From positions 25,420,001 through 25,484,000 of the forward strand of contig OX638156.1 of assembly GCA_951804945.1 (NCBI GenBank): a DNA stretch of 64,000 nt. Reading direction: 5' to 3'. Below, in pieces: positions 3,175-64,000 of this stretch. Position 1 is the stretch's first letter, and the number at the start of each line of letters is the position of its first letter. This DNA comes from Podarcis cretensis. Lineage: Eukaryota. The translations under genes and the position numbers were made by a program. Under the pieces are notes generated by a model that was given only the letters and a program-made list of their open reading frames with translations, was not told the origin of the DNA and searched no databases.

Positions 3175-3231
3175 CTGATTTTGGTCACCATTTGTGGTGG
3201 GTACTGACACTTCGATATGCACTTTCCCCAC
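3175..3231 (-). CDS. EPB41: EPB41 alternative exon 14-equivalent (57 nt)
   Basis: aatgtag|GTG; VGKVHIEVSVPTTNGDQNQ (human VEKTHIEVTVPTSNGDQTQ, from memory); donor CAG|GTTTGT. Confidence 0.9.
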
Positions 3232-5894: not shown

Positions 5895-6472
5895 GCAAAC
5901 TGTTTGCAAATGCCACAGTGAATACCAGAGTAGACCCCTCTGACAGAGCACAGGCATTTTGGAAGGAACCCAAAGACTCTGTGTTCTCAGAAGAGCCAGA
6001 AGGTGAGCAACTCTCTCCAGCTGCAGGTATGCAGAGTTGGAAAGTACAGTCATCCCCCTACCTAGGCAGAATAGTCAGACAGGAAAAAAGAAAGGACTAC
6101 TGGAAAGTATTGGTTACAAGGTTCATATGGCATATTAGTCACAGTGGGAATTGTTTGGCCACTGAGGACAACTGTGACAAATGTTCAGCTTGAGCTTTCT
6201 CCTGTGTCAGGAGGCAGGGACAGGAGGGCTGGGCAAGTAGTGTAATCTGCCATTCCAACTCTAACCTACGTCCAGAATACAGAACAAAGAGAAAATAAGG
6301 GCACACTTTTCCTGGTGAGCCAAGGAGACACCTTTACTAGCTGCTTTTGGCAACAAGGTGTATTTGACGGACCCTGACTGAGATGAACTCCTACATAAAG
6401 GACCCTTCAACTTTATATTTTCCTCACACACAAGCAAACAATATATAATTTAACAGCGGTAGTCTAACATAC

Positions 6473-6678
6473 CTGGGATCCTTCAGCAGGCTCTGTTTTG
6501 GTTTTCTCTGGCAGAGTTTGTTCGTGTTGTACCTCTTTTCTCTCCTTCTCAGCTTTAGTGACCACTGGCTCCTTGCTTTCAGATACAACTGGAGGAGTTG
6601 GTTCGGTTACATGGCTCTGAGCAATAGCTGGTGCAGATGTAGGCCGTGGGCTTCGGTCTGGTGTAACCACTGCTACTG
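6473..6678 (-). CDS. EPB41: EPB41 exon 13-equivalent (U2 region, 206 nt)
   Basis: ctactcag|CA GTA GCA GTG; (A)VAVVTPDRSPRPTSAPAIAQSH...TEPAEGSQ; the DRSPRPTSAPAI motif matches 4.1R; donor CAG|GTATGT; phase 1-0. Confidence 0.93.
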
Positions 6679-8218
6679 CTGAGTAGAAATATATTTTGTT
6701 TTAGTGAGAGTGAGGCAAACCCCCAAAATCCGACCCCAAAGAATGAAAAAACCAGGAGGAAAGGAGTCACAGCAATGCAAAAGAAAGAAGTGCAAAGCAG
6801 CTGGCACTGGTTTAATGTGGAAGGCTAAGTTTGTTTTTAGCATGTGTTGAATAAAAGTTAAGAAACCAAAATTAGATATCACTCAAGAGCCACACACTTA
6901 AAATGCTAGTCAAATCCACACTGTAAAAGCACTTCATTTCAAATGCTGTTTTTATAAAAACAGCTAATTGTGGTTTGAATAATCACCAATGTTACAGCAA
7001 AAGCCAGATTACTGCTGTTTACCTAATACCAATACACTCAAAACCCAAGACCCAAGAAAATATGAACTTGTTGACTATAAACATGTTTGTTTAAAATGGT
7101 GGACAGGCCTCAACACTAATGGCCCTTGTGATGTGACTTGCAATACTGCAGTTCTTTCCTGTGCTGTGAGGATAGCATCAAAAGCCCTAGGTTGTATGGG
7201 AGAATCTACACCACCTTTCTACAAAACCTCCCTTGGAAACTGGGTCAATGCTTGCATCAGGAGGTGACACAATGTGGACTCTTCCTACATGATATTGGGC
7301 TGCTGACATGTTTGAAGTGCAGATGGGCACCACACAATAACAATGTCAGAGGGCGCTAAGAAAAACCGCTAAGGATGCAAGAGAATGTGCAAGTGCAGCA
7401 CCACCTCCTGCTCCCAACACAAAACACATTAAATGTATTTAGTATTAATTAATAGCACCGAGAAATTCTTATCAGCCCACAATTGTATATGTTCCCCCAG
7501 AAGAGCCACTGCCTTCACAAAAGACATTTTCAAAGGTTAAATTCAAATACCAAGTACATGTTTAATCAATTAAATATACTTAATAATCAAAAACTAAGCT
7601 GCTCAAGTTAAAGTATGATCTTGGACACCAATCTATGTCTTGCACTCTTTAGCATTAACTAGAAGCACTGTAAGTATGGTCAAGAAATTGTGAGCAGGTT
7701 GTAGGATCATGCACTTCCTCCTCTGCCTATTAAGCTCTTTACGGACCCCAAAAGGCAGGAACCTTTTGTGTTTTCCCTCCGCACTGTGGGCCTACTCTGC
7801 TACTACTGGAAGTTCATGCTTACCTACACTGATCATGCAATTTCTCTAGAGTACGTAAAGTCAAGGGCCCCGCAAAACACAAACACCCCAGAGCATGCAT
7901 TCTGCAAAGGTTAGAACGGCATTCAATCTACATACAGCCCTTTTCAAAACTGCTATATATGGATGTTCCCTAACTTTCACAATGCTATTTGGTGCTTAAA
8001 GAATGATGGTAATTTAAATTCTTCTTTAACAGTTCTCAACAGAGCTGTTGCTTCTTTGAAATCTCATACCATTCTGTGAGAGTGCCATGCCACTAGTAAG
8101 TTTTTGTCACTGCAGTGAGCACTAGTGAATTCTTAGGTGGTAGAAGCAAGAGAGAGTTTTTTAGCTACAAAGGAGAAAATATTAGCCACGCAAGTGTGAA
8201 AAGCTATCACTGTTATAC

Positions 8219-8344
8219 CTGACTCCTCCTGAACTGTTTCAAGTAATAGCGGTTTTTGTTCTAGATTCTGCACCACAATTGTTTTTTCTTCCTTCTCCTC
8301 TTCTTTTATTGGGCTTATGTCAAACTTTTCAAGAACATGTATGG
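8219..8344 (-). CDS. EPB41: Candidate EPB41 cassette exon, repeat C (126 nt, phase 1-1)
   Basis: cttttttttag|CC...TCAG|GTATAA; AIHVLEKFDISPIKEEEKEEKTIVVQNLEQKPLLLETVQEES; same motif spacing as repeats A and B. Missed by the ORF track. Confidence 0.65.
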
Positions 8345-8484
8345 CTAAAAAAAGTTATGCATTCGTTTTAAAACTGTTAAGAATAAAAGGGAAAGACTAC
8401 TAGGACTACATTTGCTGGCAAATCTTGCTTTGCCTGAATGCTAACCTTACAGAGTATTTATTATTCCTTATCTTAAGCTTTTAA

Positions 8485-8865
8485 GGGACGCAGGTGGCGC
8501 TGTGGGTTAAAGCCTCAGCGCCTAGGGCTTGCCGATCGAAAGGTCGGCGGTTCGAATCCCTGCGGCGGGGTGCGCTCCCGCTGCTCGGTCCCAGCGCCTG
8601 CCAACCTAGCAGTTCGAAAGCACCTCCGGGTGCAAGTAGATAAATAGGGACCGCTTACCAGCGGGAAGGTAAACGGCGTTTCCGTGTGCGGCTCTGGCTC
8701 TGGCTCTGGCTCTGGCCAGAGCAGCGATGTCACGCTGGCCACGTGACCCGGAAGTGTCTCCGGACAGCGCTGGCCCCTGGCCTCTTAAGTGAGATGGGCG
8801 CACAACCCCAGAGTCTGTCAAGACTGGCCCGTACGGGCAGGGGTACCTTTACCTTTACCTTTACC
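8485..8865 (+). mobile_element. Sauria SINE (young, full length), antisense to EPB41
   Basis: tRNA-like head (GTGGCGCTGTGG A box, GGTTCGAATCC B box); (ACCTTT)n tail; 16-bp TSD tatcttaagcttttaa (8469-8484, 8866-8881). Confidence 0.92.
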
Positions 8866-9125
8866 TATCTTAAGCTTTTAAAAATAAGATTCAAGTAATA
8901 TGTTTCAATAAATCATGCACTATACAAAGACAGATACAACATAAAATTGCTATTGATTTATTTAGAAAGGTTGCATACTTTTGTGTATGGTATGGTTAGT
9001 TCAGCGACTATCGTGTGGGGTTTATATTATTGATATTAGCCTTTAGGATCTTAATATTCTCAACAGGGGAGAAAGCAGAAAGGAATGTTAAACCACACTC
9101 ATATGAGAAGCTGTCACACTTGTAC

Positions 9126-9242
9126 CTGACTGTTTTTCTAATGATTCCACTAATTTTGTTTCTGGAACAGGAACTTTAAATACTTCAAACTTCAGCTCTT
9201 CCTCAGTCACTATTTTTTCAAAATTCTCAAGCGTATCTTTCG
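9126..9242 (-). CDS. EPB41: Candidate EPB41 cassette exon, repeat B (117 nt, phase 1-1)
   Basis: ttcttctag|CG...TCAG|GTACAA; AKDTLENFEKIVTEEELKFEVFKVPVPETKLVESLEKQS; 13/39 residues identical to repeat A without gaps. Confidence 0.68.
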
Positions 9243-11052
9243 CTAGAAGAATTGCACAGTTAATAAACCGCCAGTAAGATTTCAATTTTTAAAACCCTCT
9301 AGGTTGTATCAAAGTTTTACTCAAAGCAGACCCATTTAAATTAATGGGCCTACCTAAGTTGTTGTTGTCGGTGTTTACTGTTCATTGGATTTCTTACCTA
9401 CCCTTCACCCTAAGGTTCCAGAAAATGTTACAATAATATAAAAATACATTATTAAAACACAGTTTTAAAAAATAATTTCAGACTAACGGTATGGGTCCTA
9501 AAATCTCTCTCTCTCTCAGGTGTCAAAGGCCAGGGTAGAGAGCTGGAGCTTTAGCGTATGACAAAAGCTATACTGTGAAAGTGCCAGCTGTATCTCTGTA
9601 TGGAGAGAATTCCATAGCTTAGAGGCTGCCACGGAAAATGTCCTCACCTGGATCACCAACCTTCAAACTTCTGAGGGTGACAGAACTACAAAGGCTGCTG
9701 CTGCCTTTTGACAATCCTAACACTTGATATATTAGTCATGTCCATTAATTTCAATGGGTTTACTCTGAGTATGACTAACTGGATACAACCGTTCCTCTAA
9801 AATGCGAAAGTCCAATAGTCAGCCAACAGGCAGAGCTTTAAAAAAAGTTTTACCTATATGAAGAATTTAGTGTATTAGTGGTACAATCATTATGGTTATA
9901 TTGTTCTTATCTACAACAGAGGCACACATCTGAGAAAAATACAGTTTGTTTAAAGTCACTTAAGAAGTTAGATCCCCATCACAACTCCACCACCTGCACA
10001 CTAAAATAAGTACAAAGAGCATGCTTTTGTATGAGCTAAGATGTTGTTCTGTAGGAGGCCACATCTCTCAAGTACTTTTGTTCAGCCTTATAGTATGCAA
10101 TGTTAATACTGTGCACAAGAAATGATTCTCCAGTGCTCAAATAATAAAAAACCCACTAGATTTCTAAAATGAATTCATGCAGAAAGAAATGTACAGGGAT
10201 AAACCCTACTTCATTTGCATAAAGCTAAAGAGGAGCTCCCAATATCAATAAGCAGAATGCTCAGACTAGATCCTGTTGATAAGAATATAACAGAAGAACG
10301 TGAAAGGTGAGCGTGAAGAAGCCAAACTGAAAACTAGTTCAAGACCCATTGTAAGAGTCTTTTCATTACGTCAGAAATGTGCTCAGCTAACATAGCAAAT
10401 GCAAATGTATATTAGATGAGAAGCTATGCAGTTTCTAAGTATCAGTTTTTGGGGAAAGTATTATGAAAAATTATATGTCTTTAGAGACACACTTAAGTTT
10501 TGGTAAGAAACTTAAGACCTCATTAACATGAATTCTGAAACAACTGAAAGAAGCAAGCGTGTCCTATACACCTGGGAGAGTTTGAATACAATTTTAGGGT
10601 TACAAATCTATTATTTTCCAGCACAGCAATTACAAAGCTCTCAGTCTGAGAATTCAGATGTGGGGTGGTGAGGGGCAAGAGTGTGGGGGGGGGGGACAGC
10701 TCCATCTCAAGTTCTTTTCTTTCCATTCCATTATGTTGCAATTTGATACAGCATGAGCAAATATTTGTATTTCAGTCACCTGACTATTAATTCAAAGTGC
10801 AAAGCATTTTTGCCAGTCCTCTGAAATCTATGCTACTGCTGATGCAAGGGCTTTTATGGAGTGAAGTACAGAAGTGGCCAACTGTGTTCTGACCAATTAA
10901 GACATTGTTTTATTTCTTTGAAGGGGAAAAAATGGGTGCCAGAACATATGAAGCATTTCAGATTCAGATAAGATGTCTCAGCTCATGAAAGGATAGAAAA
11001 GGCACCGCAGAGGCAAGAAGAGAGAGAGAATCAGAGCTACCCACAGCGATAC

Positions 11053-11169
11053 CTGGCTTCTCTCGAATTTGTTCCACAGGTTCTGATTCCGGAACCCCAA
11101 CCAACACCACATCCTCCTGCTTCTCCTCCTCTACGGGTCTGAACTCTATTTTTTGAGAGCCACGTTTAG
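11053..11169 (-). CDS. EPB41: Candidate EPB41 cassette exon, repeat A (117 nt, phase 1-1)
   Basis: tttcttcag|CT...CCAG|GTATCG; open in the frame set by the FA exon: AKRGSQKIEFRPVEEEKQEDVVLVGVPESEPVEQIREKP. A second in-frame donor GTGG|GTAGCT lies at 11041. Confidence 0.7.
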
Positions 11170-11940
11170 CTGAAGAAATTGTGTACATGTTACAGAATAT
11201 TCAGGATATAGTATATATAAAGAGAACATTGTAGATTTTAGTCTGGATATAATTATTGTTTGCTCTTATTCTTTGTTGTTGGTTCTTCAATTTGAGTTTC
11301 AGCAGGGCAATGATGGAAAGTGGAATTTTGCCTCATTCCAAAATAATTTACTTTATCTCAAATTGTACAGCTGTTAGTTATAATTAACAGGATGCATTCA
11401 AAGGCACACGATTTAATTTGGGGGGAGGATAATATAAAAGCTACCTTTATGAACGTTCAGAATTTTAGAGTCTAGTTCTTACATTATCTCAACAGCTTGG
11501 GATTCATTACAAAGCAAGTCCTTCTCATGCCTTGTCCCGTGTAACCTTGGACTAAATGTGAAGAGCCTATGTTGTGACTTCTCCTCACACGAGCATAAAT
11601 GCTATTAGAAACCGGCTCCTCACATTTCCCAACAGAGAAGGCATGGAGTTGCAGTGGCACCCATGTGTTCAGGATGTGGTAAGAACTGTGTATAAGTTAC
11701 TGAGTTCTACATTCTTTCTTCCCCTAGGGCACATACCATGGACAACCTTGTAAAACAAATTAATTTAATAATTTAAAAAAGAAAACACCACTTGATAAAG
11801 AAAAAACCTTTAAACGAATATGAACATCTGACAACCAAATTAAACTGAAGCTCTGAGCAGAATCTGTAAACCGAAAATCTACCGATTAAGACTAGTATAA
11901 GGGGGTCCCTATAGCAAAGCAGGGAAGTTTAGGTACTCAC

Positions 11941-12113
11941 CGCCATCAAGACTTCTAGAGGCCCGTTTACTTGCTGTCCGTTCAAACTGTGGTGCAGGTC
12001 TGTCAATCAGGGCACTAGCTTGTCTTGTCTGTGCCTGTGTCCGACCACTGTATCGAAATTTTGAACCCAATACCAGGAACCTGCTCTTGGGAATTGCTTC
12101 AGTGGATGTTAGC
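11941..12113 (-). CDS. EPB41: EPB41 FERM-adjacent (FA) exon, exon 12-equivalent (173 nt)
   Basis: ttttag|G; (R)[57 protein letters not shown]; donor GCG|GTGAGT; ends in phase 1. Confidence 0.96.
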
Positions 12114-12754
12114 CTAAAATGCATGTGAATATTTCCACATTATTCATCTCCAACCAATAATGACAAGTCAAATAAGATCCAGCATGGTGGCAATTACTGT
12201 ATTTGCATAAGATAAACCCATAGGAACTTAAATTGTATGAGTTAGACCATGGTGGCCATCACAACCCCAATGGTGTCACCAAGTGCTCCCCCTATATTTC
12301 CCCCACATATGAGTACCATTCACTCATATGAGAAAAATAAACAACTGCACTTAGGGTAACAAGCCATGGGGAAAGGTCACAGTTCAGCAGTAGAGCAGAT
12401 GTTTTGCATGCAGAAGGGCTGGGAGGAACTGCTACCTGAAACCCAGGGGAACCACTTCCAGTTCATGTCAACAATACTGAGGAATCAATAGTCTGCTCCA
12501 GTATAACGCAGCTTCCTATAATCTTAGCATTACATTGAATGAAGACAATGACTCATCCAAGATGGTTCTGAGAAAGCCATGTGGAGATCTGAACCCAGGT
12601 CCCCCTAGTTCACCCACCCTACTGTACCACACTGGTCCTCAGTTAATGAAATCCCTTTATGAGCACTCATTCCTAATACCACATTCTCATTTCTTCATTC
12701 TTCCTATGGTAAAAGTTGACTACCTATATTTTATTAAGCATTTGCAGATTAATG

Positions 12755-30809: not shown

Positions 30810-31171
30810 AGGTAAAGGTAAAGGTACCCCTGCCCATACGGGCCAGTCTTGACAGACTCTGGGGTTGTGCGCCCATCTCACTCAAGAGGCCAGGGGCCAG
30901 CGCTGTCCGGAGACACTTCCGGGTCACATGGCCAGCGTGACATTGCTGCTCTGGCGAGCCAGAGCCGCACACGGAAACGCCGTTTACCTTCCCGCTGGTA
31001 AGCGGTCCCTATTTATCTACTTGCACCCGGAGGTGCTTTCGAACTGCTAGGTTGGCAGGCGCTGGGACCGAGCAGCGGGAGCGCACCCCGCCGCAGGGAT
31101 TCGAACCGCCGACCTTTCGATCGGCAAGTCCTAGGCGCTGAGGCTTTAACCCACAGCGCCACCTGCGTCCC
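30810..31171 (-). mobile_element. Sauria SINE (young, full length)
   Basis: Near-identical reverse complement of 8485-8865; 13-bp TSD tgttgtcatctta (30797-30809, 31172-31184). Confidence 0.92.
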
Positions 31172-37426: not shown

Positions 37427-40400
37427 GTTGTTGTTGTTGTTTAGTCGTTTAGTCGTGTCCGACTCTTCGTGACCCCATGGACCAGAGAACGCCAGGCACT
37501 CCTGTCCTCCACTGCCCCCCGCAGCTTGGTCAGACTCATGCTGGTAACCTCGAAAACACTATCCAACCATCTCGTCCTCTGTCGCCCCCTTCTCCTTGTG
37601 CCCTCCATCTTTCCCAACATCAGGGTCTTCTCCAGGGAGTCTTCTCTTCTCATGAGGTGGCCAAAGTACTGGAGCCTCAGCTTCAGGATCTGTCCTTCCA
37701 GTGAGCACTCAGGGCTGATTTCCTTCAGAATGGAGAGGTTTGATCTTCTTGCAGTCCATGGGACTCTCAAGAGTCTCCTCCAGCACCATAATTCAAAAGC
37801 ATCCATTCTTCAGCGATCAGCCTTCTTTATGGTCCAGCTCTCACTTCCATACATCACTACTGGGAAAACCATAGCTTTAACTATACGGACCTTTGTTGGC
37901 AAGGTGATGTCTCTACTTCTCAAGATGCTGTCTAGGCCTGTCATTGCCCTTCTCCCAAGAAGCAGGCGTCTTTTAATTTCGTGGCTGCTGTCACCATCTG
38001 CAGTGATCATGGAGCCCAAGAAAGTAAAATCTCTCACTGCCTCCATTTCTTCCCCTTCTATTTGCCAGGAGGTGATGGGACCAGTAGCCATGATCTTCGT
38101 TTTTTTGATGTTGAGCTTCAGACCATATTTTGCACTCTCCTCTTTCACCCTCAATAAAAGGTTCTTTAATTCCTCTTCACTTTCTGCCATCAAGGTTGTG
38201 TCATCTGCATATCTGAGGTTGTTGATATTTCTTCCGGCAATCTTAATTCCGGCTAGGGATTCATCCAGCCCAGCCTTTCGCATGATGAATTCTGCATATA
38301 AGTTAAATAAGCAGGGAGACAAAATGCAGCCTTGTCGTACTCCTTTCCCAATTTTGAACCAATCAGTTGTTCCATATCCTGTTCTAACTGTAGCTTCTTG
38401 TCCCACATAGAGATTTCTCAGGAGACAGATGAGGTGATCAGGCACTCCCATTTCTTTAAGAACTTGCCATAGTTTGCCATGGTCGACACAGTCAAAGGCT
38501 TTTGCATAGTCAATGAAGCAGAAGTAAATGTCTTTCTGGAACTCTCTAGCTTTCTCCATTATCCAGCGCATGTTTGCAATTTGGTCTCTGGTTCCTCTGC
38601 CTCTTCTAAATCCAGCTTGCACTTCTGGGAGTTCTCGGTCCACATACTGCTTGAGCCTTCCTTGTAGAATTTTAAGCATAACCTTGCTAGCATGAGAAAT
38701 TAGTGCAATTGTGCGATAGTTGGAGCATTCTTTGGCACTGCCCTTCTTTGGGATTGGGATGTAGACTGATCTTCTCCAATCTTCTGGCCACTGCTGAGTT
38801 TTCCAAACTTGCTGGCATATTGAGTATAGCACCTTAACAGCATCATCTTTTAAAATTTTAAATAGTTCAGCTGGAATACCATCACTTCCACTGGCCTTGT
38901 TATTTGCAGTGCTTTCTAAGGCCCATTTGACTTCACTCTCCAGGATGTCTGGCTCAAGGTCAGCAACCACACTACCTGGGGTATATGAGACATCCATTTC
39001 TTTCTGGTATAATTCCTCTGTGTATTCTTGCCACCTCTTCTTGATGTCTTCTGCTTCTGTTAGGTCCTTTCCACTTTTGTCCTTTATTATGGAAATCTTT
39101 GTACGAAATGTTCCTTTCATATCTCCAATTTTCTTGAACAGATCTCTGGTTCTTCCCATTCTATTGCTTTCCTCTATTTCTTTGCATTGCTTGTTTAAGA
39201 AGGTCTTCTTGTCTCTCCTTGCTATTCTTTGGAAATCTGCATTCAATTTCCTGTATGTTTCACGATCTCCCTTGCATTTTGCTTGCCTTCTCTCCCCCGC
39301 TATTTGTAAGGCCTCATTGGACAGCCACTTTGCTTTCTTGCATTTCCTGTTCATTGGGATGGTTTTCGTTGCTGCCTCCTGTATAATGTTACGAGCCTCC
39401 ATCCATAGTTCTTCAGGCACTCTGTCCACCAAATCTAAATCCTTAAACCTGTTCCTCACTTCCACTGTGTATTCATAAGGGATTTGACTTAGATTGTATC
39501 TTACCGGCCCAGTGGTTTTTCCTACTTTCTTCAGTTTAAGCTTGAATTTTGCTATAAGAAGCTGATGATCTGAGCCACAGTCAGCTCCAGGTCTTGTTTT
39601 TGCTGACTGTATAGAGCTTCTCCATCTTTGGCTGCAGAGAATATAATCAATCTGATTTCGATGCTGCCCATCTGGTGATGTCCATGTGTAGAGTCGTCTC
39701 TTGTGTTGTTGGAAAAGCGTGTTTGTGATGACCAGCTTGTTCTCTTGACAGAACTCTATTAGCCTTTGTCCTGCTTCGTTTTGATCTCCAAGGCCAAACT
39801 TGCCAGTTGTTCCTTTTATCTCTTGACTCCCTACTTTAGCATTCCAATCCCCTATAATGAGAAGAACATCCTTCTTTGGTGTCACTTCTATAAGGTGTTG
39901 TAAGTCTTCATAGAATTGGTCAATTTCAGTTTCTTCAGCACCAGTAGTTGGTGCATAAACTTGGATTACTGTGATGTTAAAAGGTCTGCCTTGGATTCGT
40001 ATCGAGATCATTCTATCATTTTTGAGATTGCATCCCAGTACAGCTTTTGCCACTCTTTTGTTGACTATGAGGGCCACTCCATTTCTTTTACGGGTTTCTT
40101 GCCCACAGTAGTAGATATGATGGTCATCCGAACTGAATTCACCCATTCCCGTCCATTTTAGTTCACTGATGCCCAGGATGTCAATATTTATTCTTGCCAT
40201 CTCATTTTTGACCACCTCCAACTTACCCATGTTCATGGTTCTTACATTCCAGGTTCCTATGCAATATTTTTCTTTACAGCATTGGACTTTCCTTTCGCTT
40301 CCAGGCATATCCGCAACTGAGCGTCCTTTCGGCTTTGGCCCAGCCGCTTCATCAGCTCTGGATCTACTTGTACTTGCCCTCCGCTCTTCCCCAGTAGCAT

Positions 40401-40652
40401 GTTGGACGCCTTCCAACCTGAGGGGCTCATCTTCCAGCGTCATAACTTTTATATGCCTGTTGTCTTTGTCCATGGAGTTTTCTTGGCAGGGATACTGGGG
40501 TGGCTTGCTGGTTCCTCCTCCAGGTGGATCACATTTGGTCAAAACTCTCCACTATGACCTGTTCATCTTGGGTGCCCTACTCGGCATAGTTCATAGCTTC
40601 TCTGAGTTCTTCAAGCCCCTTCGCCACAGCAAGGCAGTGATCCATGAAGGGG
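37427..40652 (-). mobile_element. Full-length BovB (RTE clade) LINE, ~3.2 kb
   Basis: Perfect 12-bp TSD ccttgcgttaat (37415-37426, 40653-40664); (CAA)n 3' tail; single EN+RT reading frame. Confidence 0.95.
37441..40542 (-). pseudogene. BovB ORF (APE endonuclease + reverse transcriptase) broken by one premature TGA at 37812-37810
   Basis: Endonuclease motifs GTWNVRT, GISELKW, GDWNAKVG, IDYIL, SDHQLL; RT motifs QGCILSP and RYADD. The 910-aa and 121-aa ORFs are in the same frame, joined by CGC TGA AGA ATG. Confidence 0.92.
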
Positions 40653-41281: not shown

Positions 41282-41485
41282 ACTCTGAAACCAGCCCATG
41301 GAGATGCAATACTATTGGCAGGAGTCTCTGGTTTTCCTGTATACCTTAAAGAAGTATGTCAAATTTGTGACCTAGTGTGTCACAAATAGATCACTGTCAG
41401 CACAGCTGCGCACCAGCACGAAAGCTATTTCCTTTGGAATAGGGATAGGCTGAAGACTATGCAACAGTTATGCACATAATGTATA

Positions 41486-41857
41486 AAGATAAAGGTAAAG
41501 GTACCCCTGCCCGTACGGGCCAGTCTTGACAGACTCTGGGGTTGTGTGCCCATCTCACTTAAGAGGCCAGGGGCCAGCGCTGTCCGGAGACACTTCCGGG
41601 TCACGTGGCCAGCGTGACATCGCTGCTCTGGCCAGAGCCAGAGCCAGAGCCGCACACGGAAACGCCGTTTACCTTCCCGCTGGTAAGCGGTCCCTATTTA
41701 TCTACTTGCACCCGGAGGTGCTTTCGAACTGCTAGGTTGGCAGGCGCTGGGACCGAGCAGCGGGAGCGCACCCCGCCGCAGGGATTCGAACCGCCGACCT
41801 TTCGATTGGCAAGCCCTAGGCGCTGAGGCTTTAACCCACAGCGCCATCTGCGTCCCC
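41486..41857 (-). mobile_element. Sauria SINE (young, full length)
   Basis: Same subfamily; 13-bp TSD cacataatgtata (41473-41485, 41858-41870). Confidence 0.92.
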
Positions 41858-44215
41858 CACATAATGTATACATATGTGTAAAATAAGTGAGGGGCACTGT
41901 CTTTTTTACATCTATATTCTTCTTTTCCTGCAAGAAGCTTTAAAAAATGTACATTATTCTGGCCCTATGTTTTATCCCCACAACCCCATGAGGTAAGTTA
42001 GGCTGAGAGAGAGTGATGGCTAAAGGTGAGCTTCATGGCTGAGTAGGGCTATGAATGTGGGCTTCCCCAATCTGCTCAACACTCCACCTATTAAAAGAAC
42101 AGGAACCTGTGGCCATCCAAATGTCGCTGAACTACAGCTCCCAACATCTGTGACCATTGGCCACAGATGGCTGGCTGAGACTGATGGGAGTTGCAAGTTC
42201 AGATACTTTTACAGACTCACAGGTTCCCCACCTCTGCACAAGAGAATAGGCTAATATTATCTACCTAGGATATTTAAATTCTTTCCTCAAGCCAGTTATC
42301 TCAGCATGCAACAAGGAACAAATATCTCATTGCGTCATTTTTTAAAACAGCCGGCAATAAGTGTTTATGTATTATGAGCTTGTTCTGTATTATATTATAT
42401 TGGATAAAACACTTAAAGCAGTCAAAATCATATTCTCTTGTTTCTGATGTATATGGTGACTTTAAACACCCTAAGAAGCTATTAGGTGTTTAACATTGCC
42501 ATTATTATCTAACAACCCTTTCAACTGAGTAGTTAAGCATATCTAGGATGGAAAAAGTGTTTCTGATAGCACTCTGTGATCCTGCCAAAGCCCTGGTCTT
42601 GCTGTGGAATGACAAGATGCTGAGTACAACCAATACAATTGCTCTGAAGCACCCTCTCCAATACAGGAAAAAAATGTTTTAGCCCTATAGTATACTGGGG
42701 ATCTGCATTCTATGAAACCAGCTGGAAGACAGCAGGAAAACAGGTGACAAAAGTTCTGCTGTGAAGCTGGCTGAACGTGAATTGTGCCTATTTGATGGTG
42801 AAAGCAGCAAAAAGGAAATATTTTGCTAGCTCCATCACATCTTCAATGAATCATCCAGCAGAGATTTCAGGTCCATGAATTGTTGACATGTGTATCAGTG
42901 GACAGTGTCCAGAGCACCTCAGAGACCTGCTGTGATTTGCCTTGCTAGCCACTCTGAAGACAAATTTGTCTACCTCCATAGCAGACTTGACACCACAGTT
43001 GACACAGCTCCAATTAAGCAATTCTGCTACCTAGCAGAGTTCAGAATGCATGTACATGCAAGGTCCGATACAGCTTGTTATCAGGTTACTTGAGAGACCA
43101 TGTTACCCCCTTACATACTCAGTACATTCTGCCAGAGACTCTCCTTGAAGTCCCTAAAATATCAGACACCTGCTGTACAGCAACTTAGAGCAGGGTTTTC
43201 TGTGGGGCTGCCTGTGTTTCGAGATGCGTTCTGAGATCCGTGTTCAGATGCTCACTATTTGTAGGTCCAGTTTTTGGAAACAGTTGAAGAATTTAGGGGG
43301 AAATTAGTCCACATTTCAATTAAAAATAATTTCCAAAGTTCATATCAAGAATAAAAAACAAGAATATCCAACAACAAACAAAATAGCATAGATGGCATTA
43401 ATGCAGGGAAAATTAGGACCAACAATAATACCTGAAATCAACAAAGACCAATTTTGTTGTCTTGTGGTGTGCAAATTGATGTATTCAGTGATTTAAGTCA
43501 TTCAGTCCTCAACTCACATTTACATTATCAATGTAATGCCTCAATTCAGAATAGGTTATAATTTACTCAGACTAATCTGTAAATTTCCATGTTCAATTTG
43601 AACTTCTGAAGTCTGGTCCCCTTTCTTTCATCAGTCAAACCACACAGTCCTCCCCACCTCACCTTATAAATGGGCTTATTTTCTCTTTGTTCTTGCCATT
43701 AATATTGGATTTCCCTCTTCCTTTTGTCCAGAACTTCTTTTCCAATAGATATCCAGCTGATAAAGATTTCCCCAATGTATCCCTGGTCCCAACCAGCTGC
43801 CCGATTAAGCTTCTGTTTCATTTTGTATTAAAAACACTCAACTGGGAAATACTTAATATCCCTGATTCCATTTAGGAGAACCTCCAACGCAGATGTTGCT
43901 AGGAAGACAGCAGGGGGGGCGTATGCTATGAAAACCTGGGCCAGTTTTAAAGCAATCTTTTGATTTCCCCCTTCTCTCTGTTGTGCTAAATACAGGCTTC
44001 TTTTAGAACCCTCAGACACAGGACAATCAGTCTGCAATTTTCAGTTTTCATTTTCAAAGACAGCCCGTGTGTGTGTTTACTTAGAAGTAAATCCCACTGT
44101 GTCCAGTAAGGTTCACTCCCAAATAACTGTTCAGTCTTACTGCAGCTTAAATGATTCCCAAGATGCTAATTCAAACAGGAAACTATATTAAGTAAAAGAC
44201 AAAACCATCACAATA

Positions 44216-63286: not shown

Positions 63287-63532
63287 CCAACCTAGCAGTT
63301 CGAAAGCACCTCCGGGTGCAAGTAGATAAATAGGGACCGCTTACCAGCGGGAAGGTAAACGGTGTTTCCGTGTGCGGCTCTGGCTCGCCAGAGCAGCGAT
63401 GTCACGCTGGCCACGTGACCCGGAAGTGTCTCCGGACAGCGCTGGCCCCTGGCCTTTTAAGTGAGATGGGCGCACAACCCCAGAGTCTGTCAAGACTGGC
63501 CCGTACGGGCAGGGGTACCTTTACCTTTACTT
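63287..63532 (+). mobile_element. 5'-truncated Sauria SINE
   Basis: 3' two-thirds of the young subfamily; 13-bp TSD taaggtgctactg (63274-63286, 63533-63545). Confidence 0.9.
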
Positions 63533-64000
63533 TAAGGTGCTACTGGACAAGTTTTTAATTTTTTTTATTTATTTCTACTGCATCAGACCAACACAGCTAC
63601 CTACCTGAAACATATCTTTTAAGTTCGTCTTGTGTGTATTTTTAAAACCTAACCCCTGAAGGAACACCAAATTGCTCAACTCCGATCTGAAGAAGGAACT
63701 CGTAAGAAGAAGGAGCCTTTGAATGAGGAACAGTTCCTACCAAATCTTTGTTTTGAATGAAAGCATATATCCAGGGCAGAATCCTGGCAAGTAAAGGCCA
63801 GGGCAAGAGCTTAACGATTTGGGATTGTCCCTTATGTACACCTTATTTCCGCCTTACTTCAAACTACTACAGTACCACAATGTGAAGCAATTCTGCTACA
63901 TCTGTTCGGTGGAGAAAAGTGAGATACAACATCTCGAAACCCTTATTTCCGAAGAGTTGTGATGGCACATTAAAGAAGTGCATTCCCTTAAAACAAAAGG

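Follow-up and report, generated by a model that had tools for sequence, protein, structure and literature searches.

Three related coding exons in the linker region of lizard EPB41, with annotated counterparts in gecko and birds

We analysed a stretch of 64,000 nucleotides from the lizard Podarcis cretensis (assembly GCA_951804945.1, contig OX638156.1, positions 25,420,001 to 25,484,000), hereafter called the window, whose minus strand carries EPB41, the gene for protein 4.1R. Between the exon of the FA regulatory domain and exon 13 lie three segments, here named A, B and C, which by sequence comparison are genuine old coding exons of EPB41 with counterparts already annotated in bird and gecko gene models. 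Very probably, they are phase-1/1 exons that go back to tandem duplications older than the squamate-bird split, are mostly included, and encode the opening ∼120 residues of the V2/U2 variable linker behind the FA domain. All three would usually be spliced in, with C and rarely A being skipped, and the predicted product is an acidic, proline-poor stretch without predicted structure. We further infer that exon A is most likely a short binding or phospho-regulatory module adjoining the FA domain and that B and C are diverged copies of it.

Position, splice sites and orthologues of the three exons

On the minus strand, the EPB41 exons followed one another in order: exon 2, which contains MTTEKS, then those of the FERM and FA domains, exon 13, a 19-residue exon and an exon with KRSKRLDGENIYIRHSNLMLE. 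The window covered the gene from the MTTEKS exon through the start of the spectrin-actin-binding (SAB) domain. The FA exon (11941–12139, minus strand, as for all exons below) ended in ...KRASRSLDG with the phase-1 donor G/GTGAGT (...GATGGCG/GTGAGT at 11941, the slash marking the splice boundary), and tblastn matches of a gecko model (P0001) and an owl model (P0187) covered it at ∼90% identity, ending at ∼11939, about 2 bases past the donor. Exon 13 (AVAVVTPDRSPRPTSAPAIAQ...; 6470–6678) was read directly at its start, AG/CAGTAGCAGTGG at 6678, and its match extended to 6470.

Reading of the minus strand from 6500 to 12100, with translation, reproduced the three exons of the original prediction at the same coordinates, with the same lengths of 117, 117 and 126 nucleotides and the same peptides, each starting with a split alanine codon. 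Exon A (11053–11169; 39 residues, AKRGSQKIEF...QIREKP) has the acceptor ttcttcAG and the donor CAG/GTATC, exon B (9126–9242; 39 residues, AKDTLENFEK...SLEKQS) has ttcttctAG and CAG/GTACA, and exon C (8219–8344; 42 residues, AIHVLEKFDISP...TVQEES) has ttttttAG and CAG/GTATA. All three lengths are multiples of 3, and the AG acceptors, which follow pyrimidine-rich tracts, are paired with CAG/GTA donors in each case. Each exon is free of stops in the required phase-1 frame alone, with 1–5 stops in each of the remaining two frames. Because the junctions at 11941 and 6678 are both phase 1, the reading frame is preserved whichever of A, B and C are included.

Open segments flanked by AG and GT are common in this intron. 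A splice-site scan of its 5.2 kb, using rough matrices that serve just to show this abundance, found 107 open phase-1/1 AG..GT segments of 60–240 nucleotides, and the evidential weight was therefore placed on paralogy and on orthologues.

The question of whether automated sauropsid gene models already include the exons, which the original prediction had raised, was answered positively by a gecko model and many bird protein 4.1 models. A profile of the three peptides, one exon per row, was searched against 1.84 billion representative proteins (a 50%-identity library, which is unable to show absence) and gave nine matches. One was a partial 304-residue model from the gecko Sphaerodactylus townsendi (P0001, UniRef A0ACB8FSV5; E = 9e-24, three matched stretches), which runs in the order ...SRSLDG, A, B, C and then VAVVTPDRS..., and which was colinear with the window over 12139–11939, 11182–11045, 9243–9139, 8345–8220 and 6679–6470. 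This model splices A, B and C between the FA exon and exon 13 just as had been proposed for the lizard, and its exon B has 38 residues. Another was the macaw protein (Ara ararauna) "protein 4.1 isoform 26-T27" (P0003, 931 residues; E = 1e-8), with three stretches in the same placement, and the remaining seven were short open reading frames (ORFs) on genomic contigs that run from exon A into its intron.

Searching the macaw insert (residues 549–664) against a collection of 5.8 billion proteins yielded 1340 proteins at E ≤ 0.001; the best 120 of them were without exception protein 4.1 isoforms of birds, recorded in RefSeq (XP) and GenBank, with an insert coverage of 99–100%. A search with the gecko-model region (proteins of 167–532 residues) contributed one more protein fragment from a bird and a single genomic ORF; it found no fragments of spliced transcripts. 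In bird protein 4.1 models (XP_061305961.1 from Pezoporus flaviventris, XP_055562176.1 from Falco cherrug and KAM8997281.1 from Ara ararauna), the three exons occur in the same order and position with the same motifs, bounded by ...SRSLDG upstream and A.AV.TPERSPRP downstream. The bird motifs matching the window were AKRxTQKVEFRxxEEEKQE... for A, AKxxLExFxxxPI.EEEE... for B and A...LG..EISPIEEEE... for C, whereas the lengths differ for exon B (43 residues in birds, 39 in the window) and exon C (34–37 and 42 residues, respectively). Position, strand, splice sites, phase and orthologous spliced models all place A, B and C among the V2/U2 linker exons of EPB41. One of the 90%-identity clusters of bird protein 4.1 also contained a 52-residue JGI/IMG entry named 'glutathione S-transferase' (P0178), which is an oddity of the collection and not of the locus.

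Squamates and birds diverged ∼280 million years ago. Between the window and the macaw, exon A was 74% identical at the amino acid level, B 47%, C 43% and the constitutive exon 13 46%; the corresponding values for the gecko were 85%, 46%, 83% and 70%. Judged by these alignments, exon A is the best conserved of the three and is better conserved than the constitutive exon 13 across the squamate-bird split. Exon A was open in all of 15 further genomic ORFs, lizard-like or bird-like, and was 39 residues long in each except P0009, which carries a 2-residue in-frame deletion. Stops, frameshifts or lost splice sites in related species would have spoken against the exons, and in the relatives checked the exons were intact (A in the genomic ORFs; A, B and C in the models). 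With so many open segments in the same intron, A, B and C could in principle be chance open frames or decayed pseudo-exons spread by automated pipelines, but this is extremely improbable given that the gecko, many birds and the 15 independent genomic ORFs preserve the reading frame, the length and the splice sites, that exon A is conserved beyond exon 13, and that the three exons are mutually homologous in register.

Relatedness and age of the array

The ungapped identity of A and B in the lizard was again 13/39, and their likeness exceeded that of composition shuffles, a test named beforehand, with the score reached in 6 of 5000 shuffles. The local alignment score of A and C was reached by 2 of 5000 composition-preserving shuffles, and the protein likeness of B and C in the lizard was not significant (1705 of 5000 shuffles reached the score). 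In a six-frame search of the 64-kb window, the best non-self matches of exon A were C and B, both on the right strand and in the right frame and register. Weak matches of exon A to exon 13 and to an N-terminal exon (E of 0.56–1.5) were set aside as compositional.

The introns 3' of exon B (9072–9125, minus strand) and 3' of exon C (8169–8218, minus strand) are homologous to each other over ∼50 nucleotides just past the donors, with a score of 16 against 7.3 ± 1.3 for shuffles, none of 3000 of which reached it. Among bird exons, the pairs A/B, A/C and B/C from three species all beat composition shuffles (0–46 of 5000). The scores in Accipiter gentilis were 79 for B/C against 30.5 ± 5.7, and 64 for both A/B and A/C against ∼30, and the bird copies resemble one another more than the lizard copies do. 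We accepted the homology of lizard B and C because the intron flanks and the bird copies support it, the lizard proteins alone being insufficient. The claim that the exons are ancient tandem duplicates was thus upheld by the lizard pairs A/B and A/C, the B/C flanks and all of the bird pairs, for an array common to squamates and birds. Since both groups carry all three copies, the duplications would be older than their split.

Exon usage and splicing

We counted exon usage in 68 bird isoforms listed from five 90%-identity clusters. ABC was found in 56 isoforms, AB in 11 and BC in one, so that 3 of the 8 possible combinations were observed and no isoform was without the insert. The NCBI pipeline normally builds alternative isoforms on transcript evidence only. 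Among the best 120 of the 1340 insert matches, all 118 bird models that could be classed carry ABC, as expected because the insert search puts full matches at the top; the 68 cluster isoforms are the less biased of the two samples. Models that skip exon C come from parrots, falcons, eagles, hawks, owls and penguins; no other exon of the array is left out as often in the bird models, and exon A is skipped rarely. Judging from the bird gene models, the array looks near-constitutive, with C as the main cassette and no free combinatorial ladder, and the inclusion pattern in the lizard is presumably like that of birds.

It had been proposed that the exons can be included in any combination, and the bird isoforms do not bear this out. 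A freely combinatorial, length-tunable elastic spacer of the PEVK type, in which A, B and C could be combined at will, would be compatible with the phase-1/1 boundaries and lengths in multiples of 3, with the AB and BC subsets present in bird models, and with exons that are rich in glutamate, valine and lysine and have no predicted structure. Such a spacer is nevertheless improbable, since only three combinations, none of them insert-free, were found among the 68 isoforms, each exon has 2–4 prolines and 50–59% proline, glutamate, valine and lysine (P+E+V+K), and the sequence of exon A, beyond its composition, is 74% kept between lizard and macaw.

In human 4.1R, SRSLDG runs straight into exon 13. 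A, B and C might be fully constitutive in the lizard and have seemed hidden through comparison with the human protein, as would fit a gecko model that carries all three and a bird census with ABC in 56 of 68 isoforms and the insert absent from none. We take this as a possibility that deserves weight, yet an unlikely one. The donors (CAG/GTATC, GTACA and GTATA) are without a G at position +5 and score modestly on a rough matrix, and the gene models of several bird species leave out C or A. In addition, the flanks of exon A are shared by lizard-like and bird-like sequences, and the B and C flanks are conserved between the two copies, conserved flanks being typical of regulated exons.

In exon A, the 3' intron flank (10967–11052, minus strand) is conserved in lizard-like assemblies, as seen in read-through ORFs. 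Its first ∼12 nucleotides (read-through G-I-A-V) are kept from lizard-like to bird-like sequences, and the next ∼30 codons or so are similar among the lizard-like sequences. The acceptor region (11170–11190, minus strand; read-through ..C-T/P-I/V-S-S) is likewise kept from lizard-like to bird-like sequences. At the level of sequence, the conserved intron flanks suggest regulated splicing. Some Aptenodytes patagonicus models (P0097, P0202 and P0204) use an upstream acceptor that adds 20 residues (VCSLLPSAVWAVVNMCPVSS) before exon A, and these residues are a read-through of the conserved acceptor region.

Three TGCATG hexamers (7898, 7838 and 7712, minus strand) are clustered between exon C and exon 13, with an AGCATG at 7819 among them, and more TGCATG copies were found at 8918 and 10180. 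Exon 16 of EPB41 is under the control of RBFOX proteins. The intron that separates exon B from exon C contains a GC-rich repeat resembling a short interspersed element (SINE), with a (GAGCCA)n run, at 8500–8860; peptides of the SINE-like repeat ORF (e.g. ...AHGNAVYLPAGKRSLFIYLHPEVLSNC) are near-identical at about 41425–41933, 30865–31050 and 63370–63558. Another EPB41 intron holds, on the strand of the gene, an intact ORF of 910 residues (37810–40542, minus strand), which by eye is a putative non-long-terminal-repeat retrotransposon with endonuclease and reverse transcriptase. Downstream of exon 13, the 19-residue exon (3175–3231) and the SAB exon with KRSKRLDGENIYIRHSNLMLE (2198–2278), both on the minus strand, matched owl isoform X1.

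The encoded linker and its comparison with known systems

Together, A, B and C contribute 120 residues; their net charges are -3, -4 and -6 (about -13 in sum), and they contain four, two and two prolines, respectively. In an AlphaFold2 model of the gecko protein (P0001), residues 92–210 had predicted local distance difference test (pLDDT) values of 40–50 and no secondary structure; this output is compatible with a disordered insert, of which it is a weak sign, and does not speak to elasticity. The original prediction envisaged an acidic, disordered spacer of up to ∼120 residues between the FERM and SAB domains. Of this, the length, the acidity and the absence of predicted structure held for an insert placed between FERM/FA and the rest of the linker, and the idea of a pure spacer was not supported. 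The lizard-macaw identity of exon A (74%, as opposed to 46% for exon 13) points to a specific motif and argues against a mere length element.

Exon A starts with a K-R-x-S/T consensus of basophilic kinases (11158–11167, minus strand), which reads KRGS in the lizard, KRTS in the gecko and KRAT in birds and is followed by the conserved acidic-hydrophobic motif E-F-x-x-V/I-E-E-E-K-Q-E-D/E-V-V-x-V-x-V-P-E. PKC and further kinases are known to phosphorylate the adjoining FA region, and this modification controls the FERM and SAB interactions (PMC10887211). Exon A may therefore be a candidate motif for binding or phospho-regulation, of which B and C would be diverged copies. The fuller proposal, that the array is a near-constitutive three-copy acidic module after the FA domain in which exon A provides a binding or phospho-switch element absent from canonical mammalian 4.1R, is tentative, and we would put it forward with low confidence.

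Several points weigh against a mostly included, disordered linker array with a functional module in exon A. The bird census counts gene models and not reads, and it is biased toward long isoforms and insert-seeded clusters. The AlphaFold2 alignment was shallow, with 17 sequences, which makes the low pLDDT a weak sign of disorder, and the motif and kinase-site interpretation was drawn from conservation alone.

The array had also been likened to the PEVK cassettes of titin. Like these, it consists of tandemly duplicated exons of symmetric phase that encode a charged stretch, which in EPB41 is without predicted structure. Titin PEVK repeats are ∼28 residues long, proline-rich and ∼70% P+E+V+K. 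On recount, the P+E+V+K content of A, B and C was 23/39, 22/39 and 21/42, the values previously given, which correspond to 59%, 56% and 50%. In contrast to titin, the EPB41 array has 2–4 prolines per 39–42 residues and only three copies, and it shares no sequence homology with the titin repeats. We thus rejected a titin-type PEVK module on composition, for which proline richness and ∼70% P+E+V+K were taken as the mark; with 2–4 prolines per exon and 50–59% P+E+V+K, the array falls below titin PEVK.

The nearest analogue is alpaca 4.1R-90, whose V2 linker has a Pro/Glu-rich extension of exon 13 and an exon 14, which render the membrane skeleton hyperstable (PMC9926112). The alpaca protein and the sauropsid array are alike in being Glu-rich, lineage-specific extensions of the same V2 linker, which leads from the membrane-binding domain to the SAB domain (PMC9926112). 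They differ in that the alpaca has Pro/Glu repeats added where V2 ends and the SAB domain begins, at its C-terminal side, while in sauropsids a proline-poor array occupies the N-terminal side of V2, directly behind the FA domain. The alpaca 'PE region' and exon-14 cassette are unrelated in sequence to A, B and C, and the array is not mentioned in that report (PMC9926112).

As the exons stand in hundreds of public bird records, they are already known to annotation and the discovery is modest. A published description of the A/B/C exons was not found in the literature searched, and the residual interest lies in an apparently unpublished, well-conserved insert of ∼120 residues that adjoins the FA domain in 4.1R of birds and squamates. 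The human-centred numbering of EPB41, in which exon 12 is joined to exon 13, is unfit for birds and squamates, in whose 4.1R models ∼120 extra residues follow the FA domain. If the module reading of the array is true, the insert might contribute to the distinct membrane-skeleton organisation of the nucleated, ellipsoidal red cells of sauropsids, for which the V2 additions of the alpaca, serving camelid cells, would be an analogy (PMC9926112).

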